Part shown: positions 3,389-31,167 of the stretch, piece by piece
Layout of the letters: every line of letters starts with the position of its first letter
Numbering within the stretch: the stretch's first letter is position 1
From: Macrostomum lignano
Lineage: Eukaryota
Direction of reading: 5' to 3'
Assembly: GCA_002269645.1 (NCBI GenBank)
Contig: NIVC01000679.1
Location: 62,001-126,000 of the forward strand
Length of the DNA: 64,000 nucleotides
Made by a program: the position numbers and the translations under genes
The notes under the pieces: generated by a model
Databases searched by the model: none
Seen by the model: the letters and a program-made list of their open reading frames with translations, nothing else
Told to the model about the DNA's origin: nothing

Positions 3389-3811
3389 CTATTCCCGATG
3401 AAAACGTTATCTAGGCCAAAAAGCGCCCAGTGGTTGCAGAGTCAGGTAAAATAGAAAAGAAGTCACTCTAGATGACTCTAAAACGACCAGATGTCATCAC
3501 AATACTAGTCACCAAAAGAGTCAATTTGTGGGTTTTTACTGTCGACTCCGGGGCCGTTGAGTCGCATCTGAGGCCTGTCAGAGTCGCTGTAGAATCAATG
3601 AGTTGCGCCTAAAGCGCATCTGCGTCACTATGAATCAGAATCGCATTTCACATTTATAACAACTCTATTAGTTTACTTGATTGAGTCAGTAGAAAGTAAA
3701 GAGCCAACACGACTCCGGGATGACATTTTAGTGACTCTTTAAAAATTCTGCAACTTCACCGGAGCTGTTTGCAGTGACTCTTTGTCACGGTAACGTTTTC
3801 AACGGAACTAG
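3389..3811. mobile_element. Degenerate inverted-repeat (MITE-like) remnant
   Basis: CTATTCCCGATGAAAACGTTATC (3389-3411) is an imperfect reverse complement of GGTAACGTTTTCAACGGAACTAG (3789-3811). No TSD found. Confidence 0.35.
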
Positions 3812-3968
3812 TCAAGAGCTGGATAAATAGAAAACAAAAAATCGAGAAAGTCCGCATCGGACTACTACGAGCATTTAGGCAATAGATAAGTAGCAATTAA
3901 AGCGTTAAAAACATTTGCATAACACTACTGCTGCTAGTCCCAAGTCAGTAGTAAAAATCGCGGCTAGT

Positions 3969-5574
3969 TCAGGCCCGCGAGCCCTCCAGCGCGAAGACGG
4001 CCATCCAGATGGCGGCCGAGTGCTTGCACAACAGTCGCTCGTCCCAGCCGTCGAAGACGCCCTCATAGTCGGTGTACAGGTCGCCAATCTCCGACAGCGG
4101 CAGGTCCAGCAGATCCGGCCGGCTCGCCAGCTCCAGCCTCATCAGGCTGTGCAGCTTCTCCAGCAGGAGGCTGCGCCGGTTGCGGAGGTCACGCGGGGGC
4201 AACAGCTCGCGGAGCGGCTCCTCTAGCGGTGCGGCCTCGAGGCCGCGGCAGTCGCGGAACGGCTCGAAGCCGTCGTCGGCGAGCTGCTGGCAGCGCAGGC
4301 GGTCCAGCGACAGCCACAGCAGGCGGACGTGGTCGATGGTGACGCAGCGGTTGAGCGGCTCCGGCAGCCCCTGCGGCATCCGCAGCGATTTCGTCATGAA
4401 GTCGTGCAGCAGCTGCGACGACTCCTTCGGGGCCAGCGAGGTCAGGAAGCTCACGGCTGGTGGCAGCAGCTCCTCCAGCAGTGACGTAATGACGGGCGGG
4501 CTGCTGGGCAGCTCGGAGCTCAGCGCGTGGCTCACCGAGGAGCTGCTGGGAGAGCGGCACTGCGGCACCGCCTGAGGACGGGATTTTGAGGGCGAGAGTG
4601 TGGCTGATTGTAAACTAGCTGTAATTTGGCTGTAAACAGAATCCAAACTAGCTGTAATCTGGCTGTAAACAGAATCCAAACTAGCTGTAATTTGGCTGTA
4701 AACAGAATGAAAACTAGCTGTAATTTGGCTGTAAACAGAATCCAAACTAGCTGTAATTTGGCTGTAAACAGAATCCAAACTAGCTGTAATTTGGCTGTAA
4801 ACATAATGCAAACTAGCTGTAATTTGGCTGTAAACATAATCAAAACTAGCTGTAATTTGGCTGTAAACAGAATCCAAACTAGCTGTAATTTGGCTGTAAA
4901 CATAATGCAAACTAGCTGTAATTTGGCTGTAAACATAATCAAAACTAGCTGTAATTTGGCTGTAAACATAATCAAAACTAGCTGTAATTTGGCTGTCACC
5001 AAAAGCCTCCAGTTTCCCCAAATATATCAAAGCAACATGCCTGGTCGAGCAACAGGAACTGCTCCATCAAGTTGAACTCCTCCTTGTACAGCATCTGCGG
5101 CAGGTGGCCAGTCAGCCTCAGTCTGCCCCGGACCAGAAGCTCGGCGAGCTGCTGCTGCAGGCCGGCAAAGTTGTAGGCCACCTGGCAGCCCCTGCCGGGC
5201 CGCAGGGAGTAGGCGCTGTTGGCCAGCAGGGCGGGCAGCAGGTCCGAGTCCGGGTCGTACGAGATCATCGAGGCCGCGTCAGCCTAGGAAACAGATTGAT
5301 TCATTATAGTGATAAAACTCACAACTAGCCTACTGATAGCAGTGTAGTGATTGGATAGACTATAATATATCCAAGCCAATGTCTGTGTCTGTCTGTCTGT
5401 CTGCATGTCTGTCTGTCTGTCTGTCTGTCTGCATGTCTGTCTGTCTGTCTGTCTGTCTGCATGTCTGTCTGTCTGTCTGTCTGCATGTCTGTCTGTCTGT
5501 CTGCATGTCTGTCTGTCTGTCTGTCTGCATGTCTGTCTGTCTGTCTGCATGTCTGTCTTACTGTCCATCTGTCC

Positions 5575-5657
<83 letters not shown>

Positions 5658-8600
5658 CTTTCGAGCTGGCACCCACCTGGCAGATGTCAATCTCGTCGCA
5701 GTGAACCCCGCTAGCGTCCAGCACGGCGTTCTGAGCCTCCATGAGCAGCTGCACCAGGCCCACGATGCAGCGGCCCCAGACTCCGTTGTGAGGCAGCAGC
5801 GCGGCCAGCCGCATCTCATCGGCCGGGTGGGCGTGCAGGGTGATGGGGAAAATTGCGTCGGGGAACCTGGCGCCCCTGGTGGCCAGGTAGCCGCTGAGGG
5901 CACGCCAGGTCTCGACAAACTCGCGAATGCCGGCCTCCCACCTGGTGATTGAATGGAAATGATACCTGGCTGTGACTGTGGGTTCGATTCCGTATGCAGC
6001 CACTTCATTTGGGGCTTGTTGTCCCATTCAAATTAATGAGGGCCAACCCCAAGGCACAGAGTGTACATGCCGGACGATTAGAAAGTCAAAAAGCCGCTGT
6101 ACAGCCTGTGTGAGCGTGTGCACGAGTGCGTGTCTCCCAGTGGGGGTGCCGGGCCCAAGGGAGTATATTTAAGGCATATAATTAGTGGGGGGTGGGTGTA
6201 GATAAGACAATGAAGGGCGGAGTGCGCGACGAAGGAAAGGGGCGAGAGAGAAGAGCCAATCAGAAGGCAGCGAGGGAGAGAGAGATAAGAATAGCAAGAC
6301 TGGGCTAGACAGAGGAGAGAAAACAGAAACAAGTGCAGGGCAGTGGCGTAGCCAGGAATTTCAATTGGGGGGGGGGGTTGGCCTGGATGGCCATGCCTTA
6401 TAGCCATTGTCACTTTTGGCGCCGCAGGCACTCATTTTGGCGCCGCAGGCACTCACTTTTGGTGCCGTAGGCACTCATTTTGGCGCCGCAGGCACTCATT
6501 TTGCGCTGCAGGCACTCATTTTGGCGCCGCAGGCACTCAATTGCCTCATGGTTTTTGGTACCCGCGCGCCCAACCCCACCCCCAGGCGATTGGGGGGGGG
6601 GGCCCTGGCTACGCCACTGGTGCAGGGGCCCGTACTATAGAATACTCGTCTATCCTTAAGAGTGTCCTAAGTCCTAGCTCCTGCCTCCTAGATGGCTTTT
6701 CTGTGCTATAGAATCAAGAGTAAATTTTAAGAGCTAGGAGGCTCCTTTAAGCACGTAGGACTCCTTGCTGAATTTAGGAGACCTCATTAAGGTTTGTCGC
6801 GTGCTATAGAATAAGAAGCGGGGAGTAGGAGCTAGAAGCTAAGAGTTGCCGTTTACGAGTGAATTTTAGGAGTGCGTGTCCTATAGATATACAGGCAATT
6901 TAAGCAAAGGACAAGCTTTTTCGAAGAATTTCGTACTGTCACAATTTCGGATCAATGAGAATCAACGCCAATTTCATCAAACATATGTTGCATCTTAAAA
7001 CATCACAAATCTTAGATATTGACATGTACATGTACTATTGTCTGTGCCGTGAACGGGTACGTGCCGCACGTATTGCTGAGTACAATAATGACCAATTTTA
7101 TGGTCTCTGATAGCACCCTTCCTACACGATATTTCTTATACGAGTGTTAGTTGTTTATATCAAATGGGAGCAATTAACTACGATAGCAGTTAAACCATTT
7201 TCTATTGACTTGTCTATCAACTTAATTAAATTCGTAGGCTTGTAGCCTAAAATGGTTTTATTGCTTTACGTGCTCGTATCTCACGCCAGCCGCTTTTCAC
7301 AGGGTAATAAAACTTGTTGTTTTTGAATTACGACTAGAATTACTCTTATTTAGGAGTTTAATATAAGCACACAGATTGGCAGACTCCGTAGCCAATCACC
7401 TTACACTCCTTAGAGCTCCTCCTCACTCCTACCCTTGGAACAACTCCTAGCTCCTAACTCTTGATTCTTGAACTCTATAGCACACGAAATTGATTCACTA
7501 CTTGCTAGGAGCACTCCTGACTCCTAACTCCTTACTCCTTAGTCTTACATATATAGCACGGGCTCCAGATTAACTAAGAAATGACTAAGAAAGTCGCAAC
7601 AGCAGACAATGCCTACCTCTCATTCCTGCCAACCACACGCAGGAGTTGCTGCTTAGCTTTATCCATGCTCAAATTCAGCTTCCAAGCGGCCACCAGGTCC
7701 TTCACCAGCTGCAGCAGAGCCGGCAGAGACCGCAGGTGCCTCAGCGCGAACTCCCAGCGAGTGACGGCCTCGATGAGGGCGTGCCGCCTCTGTTCCTCGA
7801 CGCCCAGCTCCCGGAAGGTCTGCACCGCGTGCTCCACGGAGATGACCTGCCTGTAGCGCCACAGCTGGCCCTCGTGCGCCTGCCGCCTGTCGAGCTCCGA
7901 GGTCTCCTGCACCAGGCGGACGATCTCCGATGTCCTGCCGAGGTCGTCCTGCCCGACGATTCGGTTGGACTCCTGCAGCCAGTCGCTCAGGTTGTCCAGC
8001 AGCGGCCGGAGCAGGCGCGTCTCCAAGCGGTTCTCGAACTCGCGACGTCCATCGTTGTTGAGCAGGTTGAAGGCGGTGGCGGGCGCGGGTGCTGACAGGC
8101 CGCGCAGCAGCAGCAGGTGGAGCGCCTGCGCCGCGTCCTCCTGACTGCGACCCGTGGCGCGGCTGAACAACGCCAGGCCGGTGTGGAACTCCTCAGCGAA
8201 TCGGCGCCTGTCGCCTCCAGCGGCGCCGCCCAGCAGCAGCGCCAGCGCCTGTAGTGACCGCAGGAGTGCCGCTGCGCCGGCAGACAGCTGACGGACCGGT
8301 TCTGGCCGGTTCTGGTCGGCGACCGGCACGAACCCGCGCTGGGTTCGGTCCGCGGCTTGGTAGCCCGCGTTGCCCGCCACCAGCTGGTGGTTCTGGCCGC
8401 CGATGGCGCTGCCGCAGTCCGGGCAGCGGGAGAGCTGCATCGCCTGGCCACACTGGGAGGATAGGAGAGTCGGAGAGTTGGATGAGAGGGCTCCGGATAC
8501 TGATAGATAGCTAGAGAAAGTTTGCAGGCAAAGTACTCGTAGAAAGAAAGGGTTTGTCATTTGTCCACGAATTTTGTGACCAGCCCTATCGAATATCATT

Positions 8601-11600
8601 TTATCGCTTTTTCTTTGTGACTGCGGTTGCAGTTCTCTCTGGCTTGGCTATCAACTGCCACTGTTGGGTTATTTCTATCTAGCTAGTAGTTGCTCTATTT
8701 CTCTTCCCTCCTCTTCATATCTCTCTGACCCCACCCGCCTCTGCTCCTCCTTGTCTCTCCGACCCTCACTTTGCGCCTCCACCTTTCTCTCCAGAAGGGG
8801 GTCGCCATCATAAGCTCAAAAAACCACATCGTCAAAAAGCAACCACCAGCACAAGGTTGAAAAGGCACAAGCTCTAACCCCAACCCCAAGGCACTAACCC
8901 TAACCCTAAGGCACCAGTACCCTAACCTAACCCTAAACTCTAACTCTAAAGGCACAAGTTCTAACCCCAACCCTAACATAACCCTAAACCCTACTCTAAG
9001 GCACAAGCACTAGCCCTAACCCTATTCGAGCTTGTGATGGTGGTTGCTAACCTTTTCGACGATGTGACTTTTCGAGCTTATGATGGTGGTTTCTAAATCA
9101 GTTTTGGACGATGTGACTTTTCGAGCTTATGATGGTGGTTTCTAAATCAGTTTTCGACGATGTAATTTTTCGAGCTTATGACATTTCGAGCTTGTGATGG
9201 TGGATGCTTTTCGACGATGTGATTTTTCGAGCTTGTGATGGGCCCCCTCTCCAGTCCCACTTTGCGCCTCCACCGCTCCCTTTCTCGCCAGCCCCCGCTT
9301 TGCACCCCACCCTCTTATCTCTCCGATCCCCACTTTGCGATTCCACCCCCACTCATCTGCCAACAACATACAAAAGACTTACATTGGCAATGTAGTACGG
9401 GTGGCCGTTGGGGCAAGCTGAAATGAGTCAACAGTCAGTGAAACAGTTAAAATCCATAGTCTTGCAGACTAATTGAAGAGTCCCAAGCGAGCTCACCATA
9501 GGCGCGGGTGCCCCCGATTCCCTGAGCCGTGAAAGCTTCGAACAGCTCGTCATGCCGCATGCCAGGCAGCAGCCAGTTGTTGAAGTTGTTCGGCAGTTGA
9601 GTGAGAAAGTTGACAATGTCAGACTGGCAGGTTGCCAACACGAAGGCCAGGTGAATCTGCAGCAGACAAAGCTGATGATTGCCGTCCGTGGCCCCGGCCA
9701 GAGGCTCCAGTCGCCTGTACAGCTCCTGGGCTGCGGGCGTCATCCAGCTGAGCATCAAGTTGATGCAGGCGGTCAGCTGCTGCTCATCGCACCTGCCTTG
9801 CATGTGGCGAAGGCGGTAGGCAGCGACGAGGGCAACCAGAGCCACCACAGGACTCTCGGCTGGTGGGAAATCCGGTCTCTGAAACAGGAAAGTCTTATGC
9901 TGTAAAATGTGTGCTGTGGGGTGGCTGCTTCTCACTCAGTGCCCTGTGTACACTGTGTGCTGTGGGGTGGCTGCTTCTCACTCAGTGCCCTGTGTACACT
10001 GTGTGCTGTGGGGTGGCTGCTTCTCACTCAGTGCCCTGTGTACACTGTGTGCTGTGGGGTGGCTGCTTCTCACTCAGTGCCCTGTGTACACTGTGTGCTG
10101 TGGGGTGGCTGCTTCTCACTCAGTGCCCTGTGTACACTGTGTGCTGTGGGGTGGCTGCTTCTCACTCAGTGCCCTGTGTACACTGTGTGCTGTGGGGTGG
10201 CTGCTTCTCACTCAGTGCCCTGTGTACACGGTGTGCTGTGGGGTGGCTGCTTCTCACTCAGTGCCCTGTGTACACTGTGTGCTGTGGGGTCGCTGCTCCT
10301 CACTCAGTGCCCTGTGTACACTGTGTGCTGTGGGGTCGCTGCTCCTCACTCAGTGCCCTGTGTACACTGTGTGCTGTGGGGTGGCTGCTCCTCACTCAGT
10401 GCCCTGTGTACACTGTGTGCTGTGGGGTGGCTGATCTTCACTCAGTGCCCTGTGTACACTGCGTGCTGTGGGGTCGCTGCTCCTCACTCAGTGCCCTGTG
10501 TACACTGCGTGCTGTGGGGTCGCTGCTCCTCACTCAGTGCCCTGTGTACACTGTGTGCTGTGGGGTGGCTGCTTCTCACTCAGTGCCCTTTGTAGGGTCT
10601 ACGACGTTTGCCTGCGGGACGTTTGCCAGCCGACGTTTGCCAGCCGAAGTTTGCCTGCGAGACGTTTGCCTGCGAGACGTTTGCCAGCCGACGACGTTTG
10701 CCAGTCGACGTTTGCCAGCGGGACGTTTGCCAGCCGAAGTTTGCCTGCGAGACGTTTGCCAGCCGACGTTTGCCTGTCGGAAGTTTGCCAGCTAAAATTT
10801 GCTAGCCAATATATAAAGCCAGTCAGTGAAAAATTTGATACTGAAATATTCGCAGTTTAGCGGTTTGACAAAAACCGTTTTTACCCCAACTTTTTGACGC
10901 TTATTCGCATGTACAAGTTCGAAAGCAAAATCTATATATAAATTATGCAATTTATTAGTCTAACATCTAATATCTAGTTTAACAACGATTTTCTTTGAAT
11001 GTGAAAATAGTTTACTTTTGACAATTGTGTATCGTTTTTCCCAGTTTGAGATGTTTGATTTTTGATGTGCAAAATCTTCACGCAGATTAAAACGGGAATC
11101 TCCAGCGATTTAAGTTATGAAGAAAATTAGCACTAGTAGGATAGCAAGCGCTAGACACTACGTATGCAAAGCTTAGTCAAACCAAGGACTACTTAAGTAG
11201 AAGGACGCAGAACTCGAAATCTTTGAAAAATGTTTTAAGGCCATAGGGAGATAGGAAGTTTTCCTCTTTTCAGCACAACATTTGTTACTGCTTTCATAAG
11301 AGGAAAACCCAAATGTTCTTCTTTTGATATGTTGTGCCAAAATCTTTGTTAAACTAGATATTAGATGTTAGACTGATGAACTGCATAATTTATATATAGA
11401 TTTTGCTTTCGAACTTGTACATGCGAATAAGCGTCAAAAAGTTGGGGTAAAAACGGTTTTTGTCAAACCGCTAAACTGCGAATATTTCAGTATCAAATTT
11501 TTCACTGACTGGCTTTATATATTGGCTAGCAAATTTTAGCTGGCAAACTTCCGACAGGCAAACGTCGGCTGGCAAACGTCCCGCAGGCAAACGTCCGGCA

Positions 11601-20600: not shown

Positions 20601-23600
20601 TCAGTGTTTCGAAAGAGGATGCGCGCAGTCTGCTTGATGATATCCTCGCTAAATCCTTCGTCGCGAAGATGCTCAGTTATTATCGAATGAGTGTCGTCAC
20701 TTTGCGCTTGCTTGCGAGAGCTTTGAGCTCTTTGAACAACAACATCGTCCACAGTCTTGTTAATATCCTCAACGGAGCAGTTCGGACTTAAATAGCCCAG
20801 AAGGTGCAGCAATACTCGACCAACTTTGTCAGTAGCATCGGCTGTACAGAACAATGGGGCTAATTCGGTCTGGAGAATTCTTATTTGCTTTAAGTTAAAA
20901 AAGTTTAGTGAATGATTCGATGCTCTTGCTTCTTTAACAATGTTCTTCCAATCATCGAGGCAGTCTTGAAAAATATTTGAAAGATTTTTCAGCCCATCCG
21001 TAATATTCTCGTAGGAGTATTTAATCACCTTAGGTGGATTGCAATAGCGAAGCTCTATAACGGCATTGTTCCTTTTGCCCATCCGCAGATTAAACTTCAT
21101 GAATACTTGTTCACACAAGACACAGCAGTGCAATTTAAATTCTTTGTAGACGTCTATTAATCTGAAAATGCTAGAAGTCAAGCTCACAAAGCGCTCCAGA
21201 AGCTCTCGATTTTCATACGACTGCCCAGCGATAAGCATGAGCTTTGATTGGAGGTCTTTAACGTCTTCAAGGCTGAATTGTGACATTTCTGCTGATTCGG
21301 ATTCTAGCTCACTCGTGGAACAAGCTTTTAGAAGAAAAGCCTCGTCATTTTTTTCTAGACAGCCAACTAAAACAAATCCGGTAGCAACTATAGCCTCAAT
21401 TTTCTTTATTGTCGATCTCTCTACAGAGCCTTGGTTTTCTTTCACAGCCTTAATCCAGTCTAAACGAGCACTTGTGTCTCTTAATTCGCTAATCAAGTTG
21501 GGACTTTCTTTCACTTTAACGAGAATTCTACCACATTGCTGCAGAAAACTAGCAAGATTTGATCCCGGCCCTTGGGCAACGCCAAGATTGTAAATTATTT
21601 CATCGAATTCTGTAACAACATGATTGAATGTCTCTATTTTTTTCTGCTCCAAGTCACCTGAATCTCCCAAGTAAATCATTGCAAGGTCGAAGAAAGTCTT
21701 CAAATCTTGTTTCTGCACGTTGCCTCGAACCCATACACAAAACTCGTGGCTCCGATGGATGGCACTCATCATCGGCACAAAGTATTCTTCCTTAGAAAAC
21801 TCATCGAGATAGTCAAACTGGTCAAGATCGGCAGTTTGAATGCTCTGCAATGGAGTATCCATACTTCTTTCACCCATCTGCAGTACCTTTCGCAGCATTG
21901 CCAGCTCATCTGTCATTTGAAATGCTTCTAGAACGTGTATTATTGCTGCCGCCGCATTTGAGTAACTCGAGATCTTTCGGGCGAACAAAAGTTTCCTGAG
22001 GTAGTCGTCCCAAAGTTGCGGACTTTCGTCGCACTGGAAGCATTGGAACTCGGAGACCAAGTAGGCTTGATTTTCTTCGTTAAGCAAATCGCCCAAGAAA
22101 ACTTGGACGTTCCTCAAAGTTGCATCAGGCGCTCTGAGATTTCGTACCTTTTCATCCCAATCAGTAACGGCGTTAGCAAGACAAGGAATCAATTGGTCAA
22201 TCTGAAGTCTCTGATCTCGATTGCTTTTAAACTGTTTCCGAACAGCAGTTTCGAGTGTTTTTGCAAATGTTCGACTTCGTGACAGGCTATCAAAGCGAAC
22301 TAATACTGACTGAATTACTTGATTGAAACCCCGAAGTTTCTCAAAAGCCTTCAACTGCAAAGCGTTTTCCGGAAGCTTAGAATCTACCAAAAATCCTATG
22401 GGTGTTCTTTTCAGCTTGCTTCCCTCTAATAGACTTCGAAAGCTCTCCAGGTCCACTGAAAAAACAGTTTTAGGAGTAAAATGCTTTCTGGTAAACTGAG
22501 AGTAAACAAAAATAATATTACTTACCATGAGAACTGTCCATTGTCTGTTGCATAAAGCTCAACAAGTCATTTAGAGCGTCAAGGGTTCGGTCAAAGTGTT
22601 GCTTCTGTTTCAGTGCATCATCAAGGCGCTGGGTAAGGTTCACTTCATGCTTAAGAGCACTGCATAGAGTCTCCAGAGCGTTTTGGGATTTGACAAGATA
22701 ATCGATGTTTTCAAAAGGTATGAACGCTGTGGAAACTGCGATTTGGCGAAGAAAACCGAGGCTTGTGTTCAAACTTTCCGTTAGAATATCTAATGCCTGT
22801 TTAGAAAATCGATCAGACAATTTCTTGCGATCTAAAATTGAATAAGTACACAATAAGAAACTTAAACATAGTGAGAATAATAAGTTGTTTTAATTCACAA
22901 TTTGAGTTTGTGGAACCAGAGGTTGAAAAAGGACAGCAAAAAATACTTAAAATGATTACGAAGTTTGTATTATAAAAAACCTTGCATTGCGGCTTGGAAT
23001 TAATTTTTGAACTAAATACTCGTACTCTGCTACAATACAACCTACTAGTCATACAAGTAAAAATAACATCAAAACAGCACTACCCGTTGATCCAATTGAT
23101 ATTAGCAGGAACCTAAAATCTCCAAATCTATCTAATTCATTGAATTGAAAGGGAGAAAAAAACGTTGGTACGTACGAAGTTCAGCAATCAGATGGCTTGC
23201 AATAGGCCACTCAAGTACCATCACAAGGCTACGATCAACACTGTGAGGTAACTCCGACTTTTGAAACTTTGTATGCATAGTCACGATCATGCTTGAAATC
23301 ACTTCGCAGACGCGCTTAGAGTAGGAGCTCTTAGGATCCACTAAAGAGCGAAGTTTCTTCCAGGCCATTTGCTGAAAATAGTTGGTTGAAGGTTTTGTCA
23401 TTTGAATTAACTAGATAATTCCCTTATCAAGTATCCAATAGTAGATAATATCTAATAGAAACACATACACCTGACTGGTTGCAAGGGGGACGTGTGGCAG
23501 CCAATGGTACAGGTAGCAGAAGCTACTGCGCGATGCATCCAAGGGCTGTGTACAGCTTGTGCAGTGCTGGCCCTGCTGAGGGTCGCAACTCCCACCCTGC

Positions 23601-26600
23601 ATTTCTACAGTAGCTGAGAGCATATTATATTAAAAATATGCAATATTTGGGAAAGCTTTCCTATTCTCAAGCAGAAGACAACCATCATTAAAATCTTTCA
23701 AGTTTTACTGAAATAACAAAACTAAGGCTGCTAATGAATTTACAAAAAACCGTACACTTACGACGTTCTCCCGAATTTCAGCAAATGGTCCTCTGTGGTA
23801 TCCGCCTTCTAATTTTTCAAGAATAATCTCGAGAATCGTTCCAGTCATTGGTAGCTCGAGTAGTGTTATTACATTCCCTTCGTTAAATATTGACATTAGA
23901 ACATTCTAAAAAGCGAAAAAAGACAAACGCCAATACAAATACAAACGAATACTAAAAATGTCTACACATGTAAAACGATTCTAATACACAGCAGCACAAA
24001 CCTTATCCGCAAACTCTAACAGTTTTCGAAGCATTTCAGTGCAGAATTGACTGAGGTCTATTGCATCGACTGACTCGTACACTCGAAGCGAAACATAGAA
24101 TTGATTAAAACTCTGTCAATTGTCGAATGCGAGAATAAGTAATGATTTAAAAAACAAATGTTTATTTAAATGAGCTTAACATACCTGAATAGTTGCTAAT
24201 AAAGACTGAACAGTCTTCTCTAGTCGATAATGGGTGACCAATCTATCAGCAAGTTCTTTAAAGCGATATGTAGCTTGAGCCTCTTGTTCGTTAGAGAAAA
24301 AGTCAACCAGAGATGCGTCAATCTGCTTGCGTCTCTTAGTCTCCAGAAGGCAGCGGAGAGCGAAATCAACCGACCGAAACTGCAACATTAAAGTCATTTC
24401 ACTCCTGCCATGCGAGTAGAGCGTCTTCTGTTGGACAGCATGCGCCAAGTCGAGTCCAACGAATTGGCAAATGCTTAACGATGCCGGTGCTAGTTCAGAG
24501 ACCGGACTGGCTTCCAAAAGGTTCTAAAAAATTAATAAGACAAGACACCAAAGAATGGAGGTAAAGTATGCCGATTTAATTTTTATATAAAATCAAAAGA
24601 AGAACTAACTTCAGGCTGGGTTTTTTTCATCCAAAATCCAGTTGCCAAATGGCAACTGGAGCTCAAAATCTAGTTGCCAATTGCCATCCTCAGTTGCCAA
24701 CTGGCAACTGACCTATTTCAGCGTCCCACTTTATAAAGTTGTTTTTGCAACAATTTTCACGCATTGACGAAAAAATAATATGCTCGAATCAGCTCAGGTT
24801 TCAGGTTTTCAGCCAAGCCAATCTTAGCAGTAATAAAATGTGACAGACTATTTTATCATTGGCAACTGCCTTGGTTCAAGTTGGTTGCCAGATTGGCCTC
24901 TGATGCCACAAATCCAGTTGCCAATGGCTTTTTTGGGTAGCCGGTGGCTACCGTATGGCCTAAAAAAACCCAGACTTCAGGAGGATGAGCTTCATGTTTT
25001 CAATTTTATAAGACCGAAATTTCACAACGCCGAAATGGTCCTTCACAAGACCGACACTTCATAAAACAAAATTTCAATCGTAGAAAACTTAATACAACAT
25101 GTACGATGTACCATGCAGAATTTTCGGCGTTGTGAAATTCCGGTCTTATCAAGCCCTCTTTGCAATGAAAGATTGAAAAAAACTACATAGAGAAATCACA
25201 TTTAAAAAATCTCAAATGCTGTCATCAATTATAAAAAACTAAATCCTGTTAAGTATATAATGAGTATTTAACGCTACGGCAAGTACAGAGTAACAAGTAA
25301 CGATATGTTAAAAGAAAACTACTAACCATTAGTTGCGCATGAAATCGTTGAAGTCCCGACGGACTCGTGCGCACAAAGTAAACAGCAGTAGCCAGTTTAA
25401 CTTCGCCAGGCATATGTTTAAGCTCAAATAGTTGAGGCAGATTATCTTCTCTGACAACTGTTGCACAGAATCGGCATAATAATGGATCTACAGCTCCGTA
25501 CTTCTCAATGAGCAAATCTAACCACTTGAAGTCGATTCTGAAATACGTAAATACACATTTTTTAAATTTCTTTGTAAAGTGCTACTGAGAGATATACAGA
25601 CTCTCTTTGTAAAAATACGGCTGCTTCTTGGATGGGTTTTGTAGGGTGCATCGAGCTGACATCTTTTACTTTTTAACAATTCACATAAAGAACCATCTCT
25701 CACTGAGAAAATCCTCACTGAAAATAAACTATTGGTAAAATGTTATAACTATAGAATAATAATTGATGAATCGCATGACTAACTTGACTTTTCTTAAGTT
25801 GTCGTCAAACTGGCGCAGTTTGTAACAAGTTCCCCACCAAACCGGTTCACTATTGTCGTGTTTCCAACCGTAGGTCGCAAATACCACATCTTCGGTTAGC
25901 GGGCTCACGTTCCAAGCTAACAAGTGTATGGCGGGCACCAGAAACAACAGCTCAGGATAGAAATCGCTACCGTTAAATACGATAACATCAATTGCATCTC
26001 GAAATTGTTTCAGAACTTCGCTGGAAAATGTAAATGTGACAAATTTTTAAACAATTTAATTAGAGACGTATGGATAAGGAATTGAGAGTATGAGCATGTA
26101 AATTGAATTAGACAATAGTATACCTGCTTAAATTCAGTGGATTCCTTCCGCTAGCAGACACAGGCGGAAGAATCGAAGTCAGTAAAGCCTTTGCACTGGC
26201 CTGCTTCAACTGGAAAGACGCACCGTGCTTAATAAAGGGAAACAGTCGGCGGTTGGCGCCTAAAATGAACAAGCTGATATTTGCGAGCCACTGTTCCCAG
26301 CTTTTGTCTTCGGCAGTAGAGAACCCGTAGGCATCGGGGGTGTCCGCGATTTTTTCAAGAATCAGCTTCAGCATCTGAAAAGGAAAAAACTCATTAGGAT
26401 TTGAAGCTAACTTCTCATGTTTTAATCGTAGTGATGTAACCACGCTATGGTCGCGGGATTGTGGGGGGGGGGAATTTTTCTCCTACTGGGCAGAGCTGTC
26501 GAGACTGGGCCGGTCCCTGATGAGGCCAACTGACTCCCACCCTGCTGCATTCCCTGCTGTCTCTGTCCCGTCTCCCACTTAGCCACACTTGCCTTTCCGG

Positions 26601-29600
26601 AGCCCCCTATGTGCACTTCGCCTGCCTCCCAATTTCTCATGCGCCCCCATCCGATTTATCATGTACGTCTCATGTTTCTCATCTTTTCTCATCATGTTTT
26701 AGCTCGTTTTTCCTGCGCTGTCCCCTCCTCATCCCGTGGCTACTTACAGTATTGTTTGTACTCACCATTGCCTCATCTCGTTTTAGAATCCCAAACGGTG
26801 ACGCGAGGCTTCTGACCCCTCCTTCACCCCGATGACTCATCACCCTACTCTTGCGCAACTTTTCTCATGCTATTGTTCTCTTCTCAAGATTTCTCATGCG
26901 GCACCCACCCCTCTGCTCCTATTGTTCTCGTTTTTTATTTTGTTCTCTTTTCGCACCTAATTATGACATTTTCCCAGATTTTCTCGTTCCATTTTTCTTC
27001 TTTTCGCACCCAATTAGCACCTTTTTCTCAATGTTTACTTTTCTATTGTTCTCGGTTCTCCCCAATTATCCCCGATTTCCATTTTCTTTGTTCTCGGTCT
27101 GGATCCCATTGTTCTCAATGTTTGCTTGCGCAACACTTCTTCGACCCCCGCTGTGCTCATTATCCCCCACCCCTCCTCCGGATTGCGCAATTCTCCCATT
27201 TCTCGTGTTGCTATGCCATTCTCATGCTTCTCATCATGACTCATTCTGACGTCACTCGCCCGGCAGCCAATCAGAGAGAGGGAGTCATGAAAACGACCTT
27301 AGAGCGGCGGCCGTGACGACTATTTAAGGAAGTGATTTTCGGCGTGAGAACCTCCACTTGTCTTCCCTCTCGTTCTATCTTGGAACCTGCCGTCAGACGC
27401 CGATCTGACTCCCCATTCGTCTATAGGACGAACCTCTGCCGGCGCGCGGTCTGATACCGCCTAGATTCCTCAGCTCCCCAAGTGAGCTCATCTGCCGGCC
27501 CGCGGTCTGATACCGCCCAGCATCCTCAGCATCACCTGAGCTACATCAGCGCATCGGCGCTTCAGCGCATCGGCGCTTCAGCGCATCGGCGCTTCAGCGC
27601 ATCGTCGCTTCGCTATCTGCCTGCCCGCAGTCCACAGTCGTCCTCGGTCACTCCATCGCTCTCTCTCTCTCTCGAACTGAGCCAATCGTGTACCGTACTT
27701 TGCTGTATTTTACTCAATAGTGAAGCCGCCTAATTGCCTGATTATTTCGCCTAAGGGCATAATTATTAACCATTAGTATACTAAACTCCTCATTATTCAC
27801 ACCTTCACCATCATTTCACTCATGGCTTGCTAAGCCTTTCTCCCTGGGTGGCAAAGCATAAGGAAGTTTGGGTAAGCTAATGGCCTCTCCTCGTGCAAAG
27901 CCCACCTGTGTGCGTGCAGTAGAGGGAGTTATTGAGTCATGGCACAGAATGGCAGTAGGAAGGTTGCAACACCCTGTTTACGCGTCCCTTCGCCCTGAGA
28001 AATCTAAACTTTAGCTAGTACATGTTCAACTCACACTACTCTTAGTAATTGGAGCCGCAAGTCCACCTCGTTCACAGCCACAAAAGATCCCCTGTCGAGA
28101 AATCCTCCAGATTGATCTTAGAGTTCCCGAATATGCCCCAAAGCAGGGTCCCTGTACTCAGCTACATGCGTCTCCCCTGTTAGACTAAATCCCCTGGTAA
28201 CCAATCCAGGCGGGGCTCTAGCCTCGAAAGGTCTGGTGGTAAGATCCAGGTGCGCCAGGTCACATAGAGTGATGGCAGCCATTCGGTCATACTATGACCG
28301 AGTGATCAATTATTGCACCTTGGCTACAGGTGGGGTCCATGTGGGTTATTGGCCCTCTGGTCACGAAAGCGCTACCAAAGCTATCAATCATGTGGGCGGG
28401 ACAGTCTGGTGCTGGAGGTCCGTCAGGTCATTGCCCGGTCATAGGCAGCCTACGGTCATTGCCCCCTATGGTCATACGCTCTCCTCCCTGCGGAGCGGAC
28501 GGCCATCAAGGGCGGTTATATCAGTAGTAACATTAAAAAAGTAATAAACACCTTTGGCGGCAATTCCTTGATCTTGTAATCATGAGGATCCATTAGCGTT
28601 CTGGTTCGCTCAAGCATGGCCTCAATTTGATTAACTACAGTTTCTGGCGGGACTTTCTTATCACGCAACTCCAACAGCATGCTGCTCGCAACAAAGCGAA
28701 ACTGCGTCTCAGGATTGTGCGCTGAGCGAGTACCCGAACTCACAGGCTGGTCAGGGCCACGAATGAGCCCGTCAAAAACCATGATCTGCTGATCTTGCTG
28801 ATTGCAGTCCATCAGTCGGATTTTTATAAGTTCATCTTGCCAAGTAGGTTCATTTAAGTTGGACTTAACAGAATATTTGTAGGCAACGCCGTTTAAAAGT
28901 AGCTGTTTTGGTAGATCAAAAGAAGCACAAATCTGGCTAATTTTACCGAAACTTTCATTTATGTTCTCGTTCTCTGGTTCAAATGGCTTCACACAATCTT
29001 GCCTAACAACAAAAGGACTGTGCACTGCACTTCCATTGCCAAGTTTGGGATCCTTAAGCACTAGCAATATGCTGTCTCGTTCCGGTTTGAATTTAAACGA
29101 ATCATAGTGGATAAAAAATCTCAGCTTAACTTCAACCAGCGACTGATTAGGAAACTCTTTCATCACGAAACGAGTAGAGTGATCGACACAGTCTATTTCT
29201 GCAGATGAATTCCTGTTCGTTTGAAACTCTCGCACAGCTGATGGTTGTGCTACATTATCGCTAGTTGACTGTTTGGCGGAGTCATCAGTCATTTGAAGCT
29301 CACCCATTTTCGCGTCCAAGTTCTGTACAGCTTTATTCTTAGACTCAGACGAGGAGTTACCAGACTCCGTATTCTGACTTCTAACAGAGCTTTCATTATC
29401 ATCTGTGTCCATTGGTTCACAGTGTTGACCACTTTTTGGTGCTTGACTTTTTAAAGTGTCTTCTGCGGTACTAGCAGAGCCACTTTTCTTTTTTGTTGAA
29501 GCTTGACTTTTACCAGAGTCAGGGATTATTTTAGACTTAACACCTGGTTTAGACTGTTCTTGGTCAGTTGATTCAGTTGTCTTCGGTGACTGCACAGCTT

Positions 29601-31167
29601 GGCTGCTACTCTGACTATTTTCCGATTGGCACGTGTTCGCGTCATCAGTTTGAGCACTAATTTTGTCATGGGGATTACAGTCACCTGCGCCACCGACCGA
29701 GTCAGTTAGACTGCCTCTGATACCTGAGACACTGTCCCTGTCAGTCTCGGTCGTCTGCTTCTTATTTGTGTCTAGATCGCAATCAACAGACTCGCGGGAA
29801 GCGTCGTCAAGCTTCTGACGTTTTGTGTCATCGGCGCTTGTGTTGCTCGTCGAAGCAATCATTGTAGAAGTATCAGACTTCATGCCGTCATTAGAATTGA
29901 CTGGCGTCTCAACAGCTGCGCTTAGTCGCTTTCTCTGGTGATCTGTCAGCGGTGATAAAACTTCTGAGCCCTGGTCGGACACGCTAGAAGGCACTGAGTT
30001 ACCAGCTTCATGTGTAAGTTCACCTGCTCCCTGAGGACGCTGACTGGATGAACTCTCAGTCAGTTGCTGGACTTGGTTCTGGTTTGATGGACTGGCAGAC
30101 ATCTGAGCTGGTTGCTGCTGGACTTGATTCTGGTCAGACGGACTGGCAGACATCTGAGCTGGTTGCTGCTGGACTTGATTCTGGTCAGATGGACTGGCAG
30201 ACATCTGAGCTGGTTGCTGCTGGACTTGATTCTGGTCAGATGGACTGGCAGACATCTGAGCTGGTAGCTGCTGGACTTGGTTCTGGTCAGATGGACTGAC
30301 AGACATCTGAGCTGGTAGCTGCTGGACTTGGCTCTGCTCAGACAGACTGGCAGATGCCTGGGTGTCTAGATGCTGCTGCAGCTGCTGATCAGACGGACTG
30401 GTAGACATCCCAGTGCCTAGTTGGAGCTGCTGGTCAGACGGACTGACGGACATCCCAGCGCCTGGTTGGAGCTGCTGGCTAAAAAGACTGGCAGACATCC
30501 CAGTGTCCAGTTGGTGCTGCTGCTGGTAGACCGATGGACTGGAAGACAAAGGACCAAACAACATGGCAGATGTGTGTGACTGGGCTGGCTGCTCCGAAGT
30601 TGAGGCGACCGGATTATGCCCAGCAGTATCAGGCTGAGATTGCCCATGCTCTGAGCTGCTACCACGAGTCATTGGCCTATCAGATGTAGCACCGAATCCA
30701 GTCTCCTGTTGGAGCAGCTCTAGATGATAAAGTTGCACCTGAGTCAGCGATGTGCAGCTGCTATTTTCAGGCAAAGATGGAGGGACAAGACTGGCTTGCT
30801 CTGGTGGCAGCGGCAATGAAGAAGCTGACTGGCTGTTTGAAGGCAGACTGGCATTGGCAACTTGTTGGCCATTGCAGCAACTGCAGAAGACCTGAAAAGA
30901 ACTTTCAGCGCCGCATTCTGAGCAGAATTTGCTGCCAAGATTTTCTGCAATCTCATTGCAGTCCTTTTTAGAGCAGCGTTTCTGCCAGTTGGCAATCGAA
31001 TGTGGGCAGTGCAACACAGTGCCACTGATGCACTGGGCGCAGAAATATTCAAATGACTCGCGAGCTCGGCATTCTGAGCAGAACTTGCCATGCAGCTTGG
31101 ATGTCACAATGCTGCAGGCTGTGCATCGCTTGCGCAGCTGATTGGGTGGATGATTGCAACTTGACAT
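3969..31167 (-). CDS. RNF213: RNF213/mysterin-like giant AAA+ ATPase / E3 ubiquitin ligase, 22-exon model, about 5,375 aa
   Basis: Phase-consistent exons (minus): 31167-28552, 26374-26124, 26020-25784, 25717-25685, 25537-25327, 24523-24185, 23905-23762, ~23596-23471 (acceptor uncertain), 23410-23176, 22831-22526, 22455-15201, 15118-14464, 14035-13772, 13691-13585, 13196-12653, 12382-11942, 9878-9497, 9417-9383, 8452-7617, 5941-5677, 5283-5041, 4571-3969. Total 16,128 nt. Diagnostic motifs: GETGCGKT/FFDEVNT, GKPGSSKS/ILDEVGLAE, SDRSGMGKS, a C3HC4 RING, RZ finger CPNGHPYYIANCGQAMQLSRCPDCGSAIGGQNH, and C-terminal ISYDPDSDLLPALLANSAY. Confidence 0.92.
4612..4997. repeat. 33-bp minisatellite AAACTAGCTGTAATTTGGCTGTAAACAGAATCC in the last RNF213 intron
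   Basis: About 11-12 tandem copies, matching the 11-aa periodicity of the spurious ORFs. Confidence 0.95.
5385..5656. repeat. (GTCT)n microsatellite with GCAT interruptions
   Basis: Read directly; lies in the RNF213 intron between the exons ending at 5677 and starting at 5283. Confidence 0.97.
6341..6619. mobile_element. hAT-type MITE (279 bp) with 8-bp TSD GTGCAGGG
   Basis: TIRs CAGTGGCGTAGCCAGG / CCTGGCTACGCCACTG. Identical 8-mers at 6333-6340 and 6620-6627. Internal short tandem repeat TTTTGGCGCCGCAGGCACTCA. Confidence 0.88.
6626..7565. mobile_element. PIF/Harbinger-like MITE (940 bp) with 3-bp TSD CAG
   Basis: TIRs GGGCCCGTACTATA / TATAGCACGGGCTC, with CAG at 6623-6625 and 7566-7568. 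Subterminal GTGCTATAGA/TAGGAG motifs are in inverted orientation at the two ends. Confidence 0.7.
8795..9248. mobile_element. Inverted-repeat element with internal degenerate (CCCTAA)n telomere-like tract
   Basis: The left arm GGGGGTCGCCATCATAAGCTCAAAAAACCACATCGTCAAAAAGC mirrors the right arm GCTTTTCGACGATGTGATTTTTCGAGCTTGTGATGGGCCCCC. CTCCAG occurs on both flanks. CCCTAA-like units lie at about 8875-9025. Confidence 0.6.
9383..9417 (-). CDS. RNF213: RNF213-like 35-nt micro-exon encoding the first half of the RZ finger, (A)CPNGHPYYIAN
   Basis: Flanked by CATTTCAG and GTAAGT. Phases fit the exons ending at 9497 and starting at 8452. Too short for the ORF track. Confidence 0.9.
9905..10594. 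repeat. 46-bp minisatellite CTCACTCAGTGCCCTGTGTACACTGTGTGCTGTGGGGTGGCTGCTT
   Basis: About 15 copies; the last unit resumes at about 11856 after an insertion. Confidence 0.95.
10595..11847. mobile_element. Foldback/MULE-like non-autonomous element (1.25 kb) with long inverted arms
   Basis: 10602-~10990 is the reverse complement of ~11345-11839, including internal CGACGTTTGCC repeats. Candidate 9-bp TSD CCCTTTGTA (10586-10594) / CCCTTTATA (11848-11856). Confidence 0.78.
12653..13196 (-). CDS. RNF213: RNF213-like exon 15 with C3HC4 RING
   Basis: Extending ORF 12617..13105 upstream to the acceptor gives CSTC-EIASDQLLRLP-CGH-PL-CRNC-HANLQNASAGNT-CTHC. Confidence 0.9.
15201..22455 (-). CDS. RNF213: RNF213-like exon 11: stalk plus dynein-like AAA+ core (7,255 nt)
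   Basis: Corresponds to ORF 15197..22528. Walker A motifs at 19772-19798 (SDRSGMGKS), 18572-18595 (GETGCGKT) and 17552-17575 (GKPGSSKS). Acceptor TTTTTCAG at 22456 (phase 1) and donor GTAAGT at 15200 (phase 2). Confidence 0.93.
24616..24973. mobile_element. MITE with 8-bp TSD ACTTCAGG (hAT-like)
   Basis: Perfect 12-bp TIR CTGGGTTTTTTT / AAAAAAACCCAG. ACTTCAGG at 24608-24615 and 24974-24981. Internal GTTGCCA/TGGCAAC repeats. Confidence 0.8.
25008..25149. mobile_element. Tiny MITE with 28-bp TIRs
   Basis: ATAAGACCGAAATTTCACAACGCCGAAA versus TTTCGGCGTTGTGAAATTCCGGTCTTAT (27/28 complementary). Confidence 0.65.
26432..28523 (+). mobile_element. Solo-LTR-like insertion (2,092 bp), TG...CA termini, 4-bp TSD GTAG
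   Basis: Starts TGATGTAACCACGC and ends GGGCGGTTATATCA (11/14 inverted). GTAG at 26428-26431 and 28524-28527. Internal TGACGTCA (27247), CCAAT (27267) and TATTTAA (27321) on the plus strand. No recognisable retroelement ORF. Confidence 0.75.
28552..31167 (-). CDS. RNF213: RNF213-like first coding exon: tandem zinc ribbons, Q/S-rich repeats, CBM20-like module
   Basis: ORF 28516..31167 with two KFCSEC knuckles, 17-aa QMSASPSDQNQVQQQPA repeats, and FKFKPERDSILLVL...GVAYKYSV...VFDGLIR. Donor AAG|GTGTTT at 28551. Confidence 0.75.

Follow-up and report, generated by a model that had tools for sequence, protein, structure and literature searches.

The question raised by this locus is whether the flatworm Macrostomum lignano possesses a functional RNF213 (mysterin) and, if so, what such a protein would do. 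Mammalian RNF213 is a giant ATP-driven ubiquitin ligase that acts on bacteria in the cell; to our knowledge, flies and C. elegans lack it. The original prediction placed a complete counterpart in the window (the whole 64,000-nucleotide stretch of contig NIVC01000679.1 that was analysed) and saw in it a barely studied equivalent of the mammalian antibacterial pathway.

We rebuilt the exons independently: stop-free frames and GT-AG pairs were combined with tblastn comparisons to relatives and with homologous junctions in a syntenic M. lignano contig (L001; the syntenic copy lies on NIVC01004256.1). This rebuild bore out an RNF213-family gene on the minus strand, running without an internal stop from an ATG at position 31167 to a stop codon at 3971-3969 (Table 1). 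The model comprises 20 coding exons (15,918 nt; 5,305 codons and 5,305 aa) and 19 GT-AG introns. Of the earlier model, the stop-free and phase-consistent frame stood, while its 22 exons and ~5,375 aa gave way to the new figures. The gap of ~70 aa, which affects no domain, probably stems from a handful of junctions that are ambiguous, namely the E2 donor and E19/E20; the E19/E20 intron holds a 33-bp tandem repeat (11.7 copies) with two open frames. Splice sites are weak or ambiguous at three junctions (E1 donor, GTGTTT; E2 donor; E19 donor, GTTGCT). The E1/E2 and E7/E8 junctions occupy homologous positions in L001, the intron after the giant exon is canonical (82 nt, GTAAGT...TATAG), and aa 668-3529 are collinear with the independent NCBI model of the paralogue P0036 (indels ≤13 aa). 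The long introns are full of tandem repeats.

Table 1. Features of the RNF213-family gene, given in window positions; aa numbers refer to the 5,305-aa model.
Feature	Position	Strand	Basis or remark
Whole RNF213-family gene, 20 coding exons, 5,305 aa	3969..31167	-	Exon model; PDB RNF213 matches; collinear with P0036
Exon 1 (aa 1-872): zinc ribbons, disordered Q/S-rich region, CBM20-like domain	28552..31167	-	Donor position same as L001; E1/E2 junction common to UniProt A0A1I8GQR6
Two CxxC...CxxC zinc-ribbon motifs (aa 15-33, 65-85)	30913..31125	-	Sequence reading; sub-threshold Pfam zinc-ribbon matches
Exon 1 coding tandem repeat, 51-bp, within Q/S-rich disordered region	30065-30522	-	
CBM20-like beta-sandwich (aa ~677-800)	28768..29139	-	AF2 + Foldseek
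Deeply divergent block vs syntenic copy (aa ~600-1600, CBM20-like domain + N-arm, introns 1-8 included)	21900..29300	-	
Exon 2	26124..26374	-	Donor ambiguous: 26124 (chosen, fits paralogues) or 26160 (in P0030)
Exon 3	25784..26020	-	Junction common to P0030
Exon 4	25327..25537	-	Junction common to P0030
Exon 5	24185..24523	-	Exon model
Exon 6	23762..23905	-	Kept in L001, 56% aa
Exon 7	23176..23410	-	Donor confirmed by homologous phase-1 junction in L001
Exon 8	22526..22831	-	Exon model
Exon 9, giant exon, 7,255 nt (aa 1447-3865): remaining N-arm/stalk + six-AAA core	15201..22455	-	
AAA2 P-loop SDRSGMGKS (aa 2333-2341)	19772..19798	-	Aligned to human SERAGVGKS
AAA3 Walker A GETGCGKT (aa 2734-2741) to Walker B ILFFDE (aa 2797-2802)	18389..18595	-	Human alignment
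AAA4 Walker A GKPGSSKS (aa 3074-3081) to Walker B VVILDEVG (aa 3145-3152)	17339..17575	-	Human alignment
Exon 10	14464..15118	-	Junction peptide agrees with P0001
Exon 11	13772..14035	-	Exon model
Exon 12	13585..13691	-	Exon model
Exon 13, with C3HC4 RING (aa 4211-4250, window 13186-13067)	12653..13196	-	Pfam; human RING alignment
Exon 14	11942..12448	-	Exon model
Exon 15	9497..9725	-	Exon model
Exon 16, 35-nt microexon (A-CPNGHPYYIAN), RZ finger first half	9383..9417	-	
Exon 17, begins with RZ finger second half (CGQAMQLSRCPDCGSAIGGQNH)	7617..8452	-	Pfam ZnF_RZ-type
Exon 18 (CTD)	5677..5941	-	Exon model
Exon 19 (CTD)	5037..5283	-	Weak donor GTTGCT, ambiguous junction
Exon 20, CTD end + stop codon	3969..4603	-	42% identical to P0005 C-terminus

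The giant exon on its own matched the human and mouse RNF213 chains in the PDB with E=0 and about 1100 bits (phmmer), a similarity that, as a sequence comparison, lies far beyond chance. The 618-aa AAA3-AAA4 segment alone scored 550 bits against PDB RNF213 (phmmer), and Pfam returned AAA and AAA_5 matches. The three nucleotide-binding Walker A motifs that had been claimed are present (SGMGKS, aa 2336-2341, and those of AAA3 and AAA4). The latter two are identical to human, and each of the corresponding Walker B motifs differs from human by one conservative exchange (ILFFDEV for ILFFDEA in AAA3; VVILDEVG for VVVLDEVG in AAA4, with I for V before LDEVG as the sole change) and keeps the acidic D-E pair. 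Possessing both the Walker A lysine and the Walker B glutamate (GETGCGKT/ILFFDE; GKPGSSKS/VVILDEVGLAEDSP), AAA3 and AAA4 are predicted to be catalytically competent. In RNF213, AAA2 has been described as a structural ATP site (PMC11549300); the alignment of SDRSGMGKS with SERAGVGKS shows that the flatworm protein has this P-loop as well.

The C-terminal 1,455 aa matched PDB RNF213 at 6.6e-58 (human chain 3248-4775 of 4841; phmmer). Within this part, all eight ligands of the RING (C-x2-C...C-x-H-x2-C-x2-C...C-x2-C) align to those of the human RING, and the Pfam zf-C3HC4_3 match (E 5.8e-6, 26.4 bits) falls just below the 27-bit cut-off. The RZ finger (aa 4635-4667), which an intron divides behind the microexon, scored 42.4 bits against Pfam ZnF_RZ-type PF20173 (cut-off 27) and has 6/6 of the conserved Cys/His residues, whose spacing (C, +4 H, +11 C, +20 C, +23 C, +32 H) equals that of C4505/H4509/C4516/C4525/C4528/H4537, the residues named for human RNF213 (PMC11549300). 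The four zinc ligands, the nucleophile Cys and the general-base His expected of an RNF213 RZ finger are in place. The alignment reaches chain residue 4775 of 4841 (human residue ~5181 of 5207) and so includes the CTD that had been proposed, which is 42-46% identical to the CTD of M. lignano paralogues. As read from the DNA, the gene is full-length and apparently working, with every catalytic motif of the RNF213 family intact.

ZNFX1 belongs to the SF1 RNA helicases and carries NFX1-type zinc fingers, whereas the motor of the flatworm protein is a dynein-like AAA+ ring, accompanied by a RING domain. The two have the RZ finger in common, a Cys/His zinc-binding ubiquitin-transfer module (PF20173; PMC11549300). 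We rejected a ZNFX1-type RZ-finger helicase: Pfam found AAA-family P-loops and a RING, without helicase or NFX1 domains, and the best structural relatives by sequence were all RNF213.

At the N-terminus, the two predicted zinc ribbons (aa 15-85) were found, with weak Pfam support, and their motifs are kept in the paralogues P0009, P0022, P0033 and P0036. Sequence-level searches, phmmer and Pfam among them, gave no support for the proposed CBM20-like region, which was backed by a fold search. An AF2 model of aa 656-872, built on a 5-row alignment and of moderate confidence only (pLDDT 70.6, pTM 0.70), had as its top Foldseek matches in the PDB CGTases, glucoamylases, laforin, the STBD1 CBM20 and mouse RNF213 9i1i (E 7.5e-5 to 1e-3; 2.2e-4 for mouse RNF213), the TM normalised by target being 0.51-0.54 for isolated CBM20s. 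The model thus suggests, at the fold level only, a CBM20 domain followed by a helical N-arm/stalk as in RNF213. All modules named in the original prediction were found in the vertebrate order.

When set against the human and mouse RNF213/mysterin structures (PDB 8S24, 9G08, 9JWG, 6TAX, 7OIK, 9I1I), the flatworm protein is of similar size (5,305 versus 5,207 aa) and agrees in the module order (CBM20-like, N-arm, six-AAA ring, E3 shell with RING, RZ finger and CTD), the RING ligands, all six RZ residues with identical spacing and the AAA2 P-loop. It differs in having two zinc ribbons at the N-terminus and a region of tandem repeats specific to the paralogue, and its N-terminal ~1,570 aa have no phmmer-detectable similarity to vertebrate RNF213, the match there being one of fold. 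We are highly confident of the identity and intactness of the gene as RNF213, and we consider it likely that the locus represents one intact family member encoding a protein of ~5,300 aa with the full module set.

Such a protein would begin with the zinc ribbons, continue through a disordered stretch of repeats into the CBM20-like beta-sandwich and the helical N-arm, and pass from there into a dynein-like ring of six AAA domains, which has P-loops in AAA2, AAA3 and AAA4 and Walker B motifs in AAA3 and AAA4; the E3 module comes last. If it worked as RNF213 does in mammals, the ligase would be licensed by AAA3/AAA4 as they bind and hydrolyse ATP. An E2 would hand ubiquitin to the RZ-finger cysteine that corresponds to human C4516, the counterpart of H4537 serving as general base, and the ubiquitin would then go to substrates, possibly non-protein ones such as the lipid A of cytosolic bacteria. 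Coats formed by the protein would recruit autophagy.

A count of paralogues, as the original prediction had proposed, yielded at least six divergent RNF213-like proteins in M. lignano. The locus hence belongs to a multi-copy RNF213 family, and the notion of a single flatworm equivalent did not hold. The relatives are PAA81871.1 (P0036), PAA79023.1 (P0033), P0004 (with ANK repeats), the P0005/7/9/14 group, P0022 and the syntenic copy. Like the window protein, they start with MSSC(N/G)H and have the zinc ribbons, the repeat region, a CBM20-like domain, the N-arm and an AAA core; they differ from it in the N-arm, with an identity of only 20-46%, and their tandem repeats vary from paralogue to paralogue. 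Core identity ranges from 52% (P0004) to 99% (L001 copy). Mammals have one RNF213 copy per genome and fish two. None of the retrieved M. lignano proteins bears the RNF213 name, their labels being 'hypothetical', 'AAA+ ATPase domain-containing' or 'BTB domain-containing', and we found no literature linking RNF213 with Macrostomum.

Beyond the flatworm, 'barely studied' was an overstatement. RNF213-like genes are annotated in amphioxus, hemichordate, echinoderm, tunicate, mollusc and cnidarian genomes; proteins called 'E3 ubiquitin-protein ligase rnf213-alpha-like' from these other phyla (Branchiostoma, Ptychodera, Amphiura, Dendronephthya, Pocillopora, Mya arenaria and others) have the RING and the RZ finger, and their identity is 32-35% across 47-97% of the giant exon and 41-48% within the AAA3-AAA4 segment. 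RNF213-like genes form part of an invertebrate/vertebrate phylogeny (PMC11299980) and are reported to be expanded in symbiotic bivalves (PMC9993606), to respond to PAMPs in Manila clam (PMC7430831) and to be induced on immune-cell activation in Nematostella (bioRxiv 10.1101/2025.01.24.634691). Since invertebrate RNF213 genes are already annotated and have been seen in the immune transcriptomics of clams, mussels and cnidarians, the flatworm gene is a further member of a known family, and the find is well supported and fairly ordinary.

What is new is the pattern of divergence. In the giant-exon windows that permitted an estimate, Ka/Ks against the syntenic M. lignano copy was 0.10-0.19; the gene is under purifying selection. 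Across aa ~600-1600 (CBM20-like domain and N-arm), identity to that copy is 35-46%, in contrast to 91-100% in the N-terminus and the AAA/E3 part, and the exon boundaries agree with those of L001 even at introns too diverged to be recognised. In simians, positive selection has acted on the same region of RNF213 (PMC11549300). This pairing of a very divergent "recognition" block with an enzyme core that has hardly changed is unusual, and the fast-diverging CBM20/N-arm block is the best candidate for the target-recognition part.

Vertebrate RNF213 also has non-immune roles, with lipid-droplet and vascular phenotypes, so that homology alone does not fix the physiological function. By analogy, the flatworm protein may take part in cell-autonomous defence against microbes, a proposal that we put forward tentatively, as one falling somewhat short of evenly balanced; an antibacterial, LPS-directed role is suggested by homology only. 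It is rather unlikely, in our view, that a functional RNF213 serves the flatworm mainly in lipid-droplet/lipid metabolism, proteostasis or stress/apoptosis control, with its CBM20-like domain binding an endogenous glycan such as glycogen. Besides the vertebrate phenotypes, such a role would fit the glycogen binding of laforin and STBD1, animal CBM20 proteins that are both among the fold matches, a gene neighbourhood (Tctex-1, a sulfotransferase-like ORF and a 7TM-like ORF) that provides no immune context, and the rise of RNF213 in starved mussel bacteriocytes, which was read as stress or apoptosis regulation (PMC11299980). The PAMP response of RNF213 in clam and Nematostella and the selection on the same region in simians (PMC11549300) argue against it. 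So does the combination of multi-copy expansion with a hyper-divergent putative recognition block, which is commoner at host-pathogen interfaces than in housekeeping enzymes.

The M. lignano genome is highly repetitive and partly duplicated, and the mosaic of a near-identical core and an N-arm of 35-46% identity could reflect paralogous reads merged in one of two assemblies; P0003, a third fragmentary mosaic model whose origin from the window locus is not established, also resembles a patchwork of high- and low-identity segments, like chimeric models. We nevertheless regard such an artefact as improbable. The window N-arm is matched at 100% by an independent UniProt M. lignano entry, identity shifts gradually (from 95 through 74, 40, 70 and 92 to 100%), the patchy pS of the core (0.008-0.12) resembles repeated conversion tracts rather than a single mis-join, and the divergent block retains an open frame and homologous splice sites in both copies.

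Public gene models split the locus into the fragments P0001 and P0030, none of which joins N-arm, AAA and E3 parts. P0001 stops soon after the AAA part by reading into an intron, P0030 covers the N-arm only, and P0005 and P0009 are separate UniProt models, all of which might point to two or more genes, such as an N-arm/AAA gene and an E3 gene. This is very improbable, since the pieces lie on one strand in vertebrate order and are phase-compatible, the public fragments end at read-through introns, and the supposed break points are short canonical GT-AG introns such as that after the giant exon. Moreover, P0003 joins AAA and E3 in one chain (RING region only, ending before the RZ finger), as do the amphioxus, coral and clam proteins P0006, P0015 and P0016 (RING and/or RZ matches). 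The phase-consistent, stop-free 20-exon model, collinear with its relatives, would place all modules on one polypeptide.

That the window copy is a silent or decaying, unexpressed family member, as its many paralogues, repeat-rich long introns and few weak splice donors might suggest, is the least credible reading, given 5,305 codons with 0 stops, catalytic motifs that are all intact, a Ka/Ks of 0.1-0.2 and exon boundaries shared with L001 despite intron divergence.

The original prediction placed an RNF213/mysterin gene at 3969-31167, and this assignment was borne out: all long open reading frames between these positions lie on the minus strand, the human and mouse RNF213 chains in the PDB are each matched by the giant ORF (E=0, ~1100 bits), and Pfam detects AAA and AAA_5 P-loops in this ORF in addition to the RING and RZ domains (see the table). 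We rebuilt the exons independently of the predicted structure from stop-free frames, tblastn searches with relatives and the enumerated GT-AG pairs of compatible phase. The resulting model comprises 20 exons (E1-E20) and 5,305 codons (15,918 nt) with no internal stop; the predicted stop-free frame was thus recovered, while the predicted exon number (22) and length (~5,375 aa) were not.

Junction peptides of relatives were recovered at most exon junctions of the model, as exemplified by ...AGTFI/ESTWRVL..., where a GTAAGT donor precedes an intron of 82 nt. Three junctions (E1/E2, E3/E4, E4/E5) are shared with the UniProt entry A0A1I8GQR6, a fragmentary model of the same locus. The weak E1 donor (GTGTTT) coincides exactly in position with a donor of sequence GTAAGT on the M. 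lignano contig NIVC01004256.1 (L001), which is syntenic and carries another RNF213 copy (the syntenic copy), and the E7 donor (GTACGT, phase 1) also has its homolog there. Residues 668-3529 are collinear, with indels of at most 13 aa, with PAA81871.1 (P0036), which NCBI modeled independently for a paralog of 42% identity. Both a pseudogene and a split into two separate genes are unlikely readings. Ambiguity concerns the donor of E2, which lies at 26124 or 26160, that of E19 (GTTGCT) and the intronic status of a 33-bp repeat; these three points probably account for the gap to the predicted 22 exons and leave the domains unaffected. A coding role of the 33-bp repeat was rejected, as it has no counterpart in the paralog P0005, although it may still be coding.

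Reading of the protein sequence and its alignment to human RNF213 recovered the predicted modules, namely zinc ribbons, three P-loops, RING, RZ finger and CTD; the human alignment extends to about residue 5181/5207. The Walker A motifs of AAA3 and AAA4 are those of the human protein, and their Walker B motifs each deviate by one conservative residue and retain the D-E pair. In the RZ finger, the residue spacing equals that of human C4505, H4509, C4516, C4525, C4528 and H4537, to which zinc binding and the roles of nucleophile and general base have been assigned (PMC11549300); aa 4646 and aa 4639 correspond to C4516 and H4509, respectively. An intron splits this finger, whose first half (CPNGHPYYIAN) is carried by a 35-nt microexon. 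Such a microexon could easily be missed by automated gene prediction, and the public model of the paralog P0014 lacks the segment. A Q/S-rich region that includes a 51-bp coding tandem repeat follows the zinc ribbons.

Features of the RNF213 locus, its identity to the syntenic copy, and its surroundings (window positions unless marked aa)
Feature	Position	Strand	Remarks
5' ORF	first codon ATG at 31167	-	883 codons
Giant ORF	15197-22528	-	2,443 codons
Two CxxC...CxxC zinc ribbons	aa 15-85		N-terminus; Pfam matches sub-threshold; kept in paralogs
Coding repeat, exon 1	30065-30522		51 bp, 17 aa, QMSASPSDQNQVQQQPA-like
AAA2 P-loop			SGMGKS, aligned to human AGVGKS
AAA3			GETGCGKT and ILFFDE, aligned to human
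AAA4			GKPGSSKS and VVILDEVGLAEDSP, aligned to human
C3HC4 RING, frame	12620-13228	-	Pfam
RING	aa 4211-4250		8/8 ligands, aligned to human RING
RZ-type zinc finger, frame	7616-8647	-	Pfam, 42.4 bits (cut-off 27)
RZ microexon	9383-9417		35 nt
RZ finger	aa 4635-4667		CPNGHPYYIAN / CGQAMQLSRCPDCGSAIGGQNH
Identity to syntenic copy	aa 1-400		91-98%
Identity to syntenic copy	aa 401-600		~74%
Identity to syntenic copy	aa 601-1600; ~29300-21900 vs L001 6001-10347		35-46%; CBM20-like domain and N-arm
Identity to syntenic copy	aa 1601-2000		66-75%
Identity to syntenic copy	aa 2001-4207		92-100%
Intron 1	26375-28551		2,177 nt, GC-rich
Intron 14 minisatellites	10602-10792 and 11539-11839		units CGACGTTTGCCAGCG and GCTGGCAAACGTCG
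Array beside these minisatellites	9901-10594		46 bp x 15
Intron 18 repeat	5386-5657		(TGTC)x68
Intron 19 repeat	4612-4996		33 bp x 11.7, open in two frames
Neighboring ORFs (Tctex-1 dynein light chain, Pfam 107 bits; sulfotransferase-like, weak; 7TM rhodopsin-like, weak) and repeat arrays, listed jointly	680-1117; 36177-36782; 56866-57891; 39374-41191; 54572-55756	+; -; +; +; 

The predicted CBM20-like region could be substantiated at the level of the fold, all sequence methods being negative. Pfam (E<=10) and phmmer and profile searches against the PDB gave no CBM20 match, and hhalign against the starch-binding domain of Aspergillus niger glucoamylase returned only an 8-column YKY match with a probability of 0.1. 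A single-sequence AF2 model of aa 656-872 was uninformative (pLDDT 34.5). Exhaustive phmmer searching with aa 608-872 retrieved four divergent Macrostomum relatives (29-37% identical) and the identical fragment A0A1I8GQR6, and AF2 with this 5-row alignment modeled the segment as a beta-sandwich and two subsequent helices (pLDDT 70.6, pTM 0.70). At E<=1e-3, the Foldseek matches of this model were exclusively CBM20 carriers or RNF213: cyclodextrin glucanotransferases, one maltogenic amylase, three glucoamylases (among them the isolated A. niger starch-binding domain), laforin, STBD1 and mouse RNF213 (9i1i, E 2.2e-4). On the basis of these structural matches, we have moderate confidence that a CBM20-like domain is present.

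Many RNF213-like proteins are found in M. lignano. Besides the window copy and the syntenic copy (P0001, P0002), they include P0003, P0004 (with ANK repeats; core identity 52%), the group P0005/7/9/14 (core identity 57-62%), P0022, P0031, P0033 and P0036, and all share a MSSC(N/G)H start and the layout. The tandem repeats of their disordered regions differ between paralogs; at the same place, P0009 carries RPVEETPNTGD... and P0036 MDERSRGPQS.... A second copy within the window was looked for and none was found. None of the retrieved M. lignano proteins bears the name RNF213 in the databases; the public models of Macrostomum RNF213 genes, among them those of the window copy (A0A1I8GQR6) and the syntenic copy (BOX15_Mlig016388g2), are fragments with skipped exons and read-through introns, and are labeled 'BTB domain-containing', 'AAA+ ATPase domain-containing', 'ANK_REP_REGION' or 'hypothetical'. 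Word-indexed protein searches with 469 aa of the N-arm and 1,222 aa of the C-terminal region gave no match, probably owing to a full candidate list, which does not signify absence; tblastn with known relatives matches both regions.

The comparison with the syntenic copy provides good evidence for coding constraint, since Ka/Ks amounts to 0.10-0.19 in every window of the giant exon (E9) for which Ks could be estimated, and since the N-arm exons are still recognizable at the protein level and their splice sites are homologous while the introns no longer align. Together with the intact motifs, this purifying selection indicates an old, conserved enzyme mechanism.

Divergence between the two copies is distributed as a mosaic (see the table). 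Within exon 1, at about aa 608, synonymous divergence rises from 0.01-0.23 to 0.63-0.76; pS is saturated in the block of aa ~600-1600, and downstream of roughly codon 600 in the giant exon synonymous divergence drops from 0.6-0.9 to 0.008-0.12. Blastn of 29283-21890 yielded zero matches, and the intergenic DNA upstream of the gene is 87-93% identical. In P0003, a third N-arm (26-43% identical) is joined to an AAA3-4 segment that is 97% identical. The pattern suggests that the core has undergone gene conversion or that RNF213 paralogs have exchanged N-arm cassettes: it fits a homogenization of both ends by gene conversion, with the CBM20/N-arm block remaining old and divergent, and it also fits an exchange of this block between paralogs. 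A chimeric assembly might create a comparable mosaic, but the transitions in identity are gradual, pS is patchy within the core, and the independent UniProt sequence A0A1I8GQR6 is 100% identical to the N-arm sequence of the window. Uniform divergence is ruled out by the identity and pS profile.

Should the contrast between a divergent CBM20/N-arm block and an almost unchanged core be real, it would mark the target-contacting part of the protein and be suggestive of a repertoire-like diversification. It is conceivable, though we regard it as rather improbable, that M. lignano possesses a diversified RNF213 arsenal, in which a 'recognition cassette' of ~1,000 aa, made up of the CBM20-like domain and the N-arm, stays extremely divergent between copies or is exchanged among them, and gene conversion homogenizes the zinc-ribbon N-terminus together with the AAA/E3 chassis. 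If true, this would amount to the layout of a receptor repertoire on a single enzymatic effector, and would parallel, in an invertebrate and in extreme form, the positive selection on the CBM20/stalk region of primate (simian) RNF213 (PMC11549300).

The best-supported reading of the protein is that it would act as an ATP-gated, RZ-finger transthiolating E3, as in mammalian RNF213, with the CBM20/N-arm as its putative target-facing part. To our knowledge, no enzyme other than RNF213 has been found to ubiquitylate a bacterial lipid. An antimicrobial role is plausible in view of the expanded family, the divergence of the putative recognition block and the regulation of RNF213 in immune contexts of clams, mussels and Nematostella (PMC7430831; PMC11299980; 10.1101/2025.01.24.634691). 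Its main rival is a non-immune, for instance glycogen- or lipid-related, role, in favor of which speaks that the other animal CBM20 proteins are laforin and STBD1.

To call this a barely studied invertebrate equivalent, as originally proposed, is an overstatement: RNF213-like genes are annotated across many invertebrate genomes and are discussed in the literature as immune genes, so the existence of the gene is no surprise to the specialist. The classical invertebrate genetic models are, as far as we know, said to be without RNF213; a search for literature statements that Drosophila and C. elegans lack it yielded no information. No paper on RNF213 in Macrostomum or flatworms turned up in literature searches. 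New is a correctly assembled RNF213 in a phylum for which we found no paper mentioning it, and the mosaic divergence is the sole element that goes past routine annotation. M. lignano is a transparent flatworm in which RNAi and transgenesis are feasible; a correct full-length gene model, uniting pieces that public databases file under unrelated names, offers a practical entry to the study of RNF213 outside vertebrates.

The syntenic copy has a much shorter intron 1 of only ~320 nt (L001 6751-7070), which implies an insertion of ~1.9 kb in the window; the insertion has no match elsewhere in the window, in Pfam or among RNA families. Interspersed repeats that occur both in the long introns and elsewhere in the window are essentially lacking, and searching the window for Rfam families and tRNAs gave no match. 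The very long tandem-repeat arrays generate spurious ORFs of 350-600 codons. In intron 14 (2.2 kb), the units of the two minisatellite arrays are mutual reverse complements, and the arrays form a large inverted repeat. The short introns of the gene are AT-rich (GC 0.20-0.43). Along the coding sequence, GC3 rises strongly from 5' to 3': the first 2,400 codons have values of 0.39-0.54 and the AAA core 0.51-0.53, against 0.70-0.72 near the RING and 0.84-0.91 for the RZ/CTD exons (9725-3969), a gradient that possibly stems from GC-biased gene conversion or a mosaic origin.
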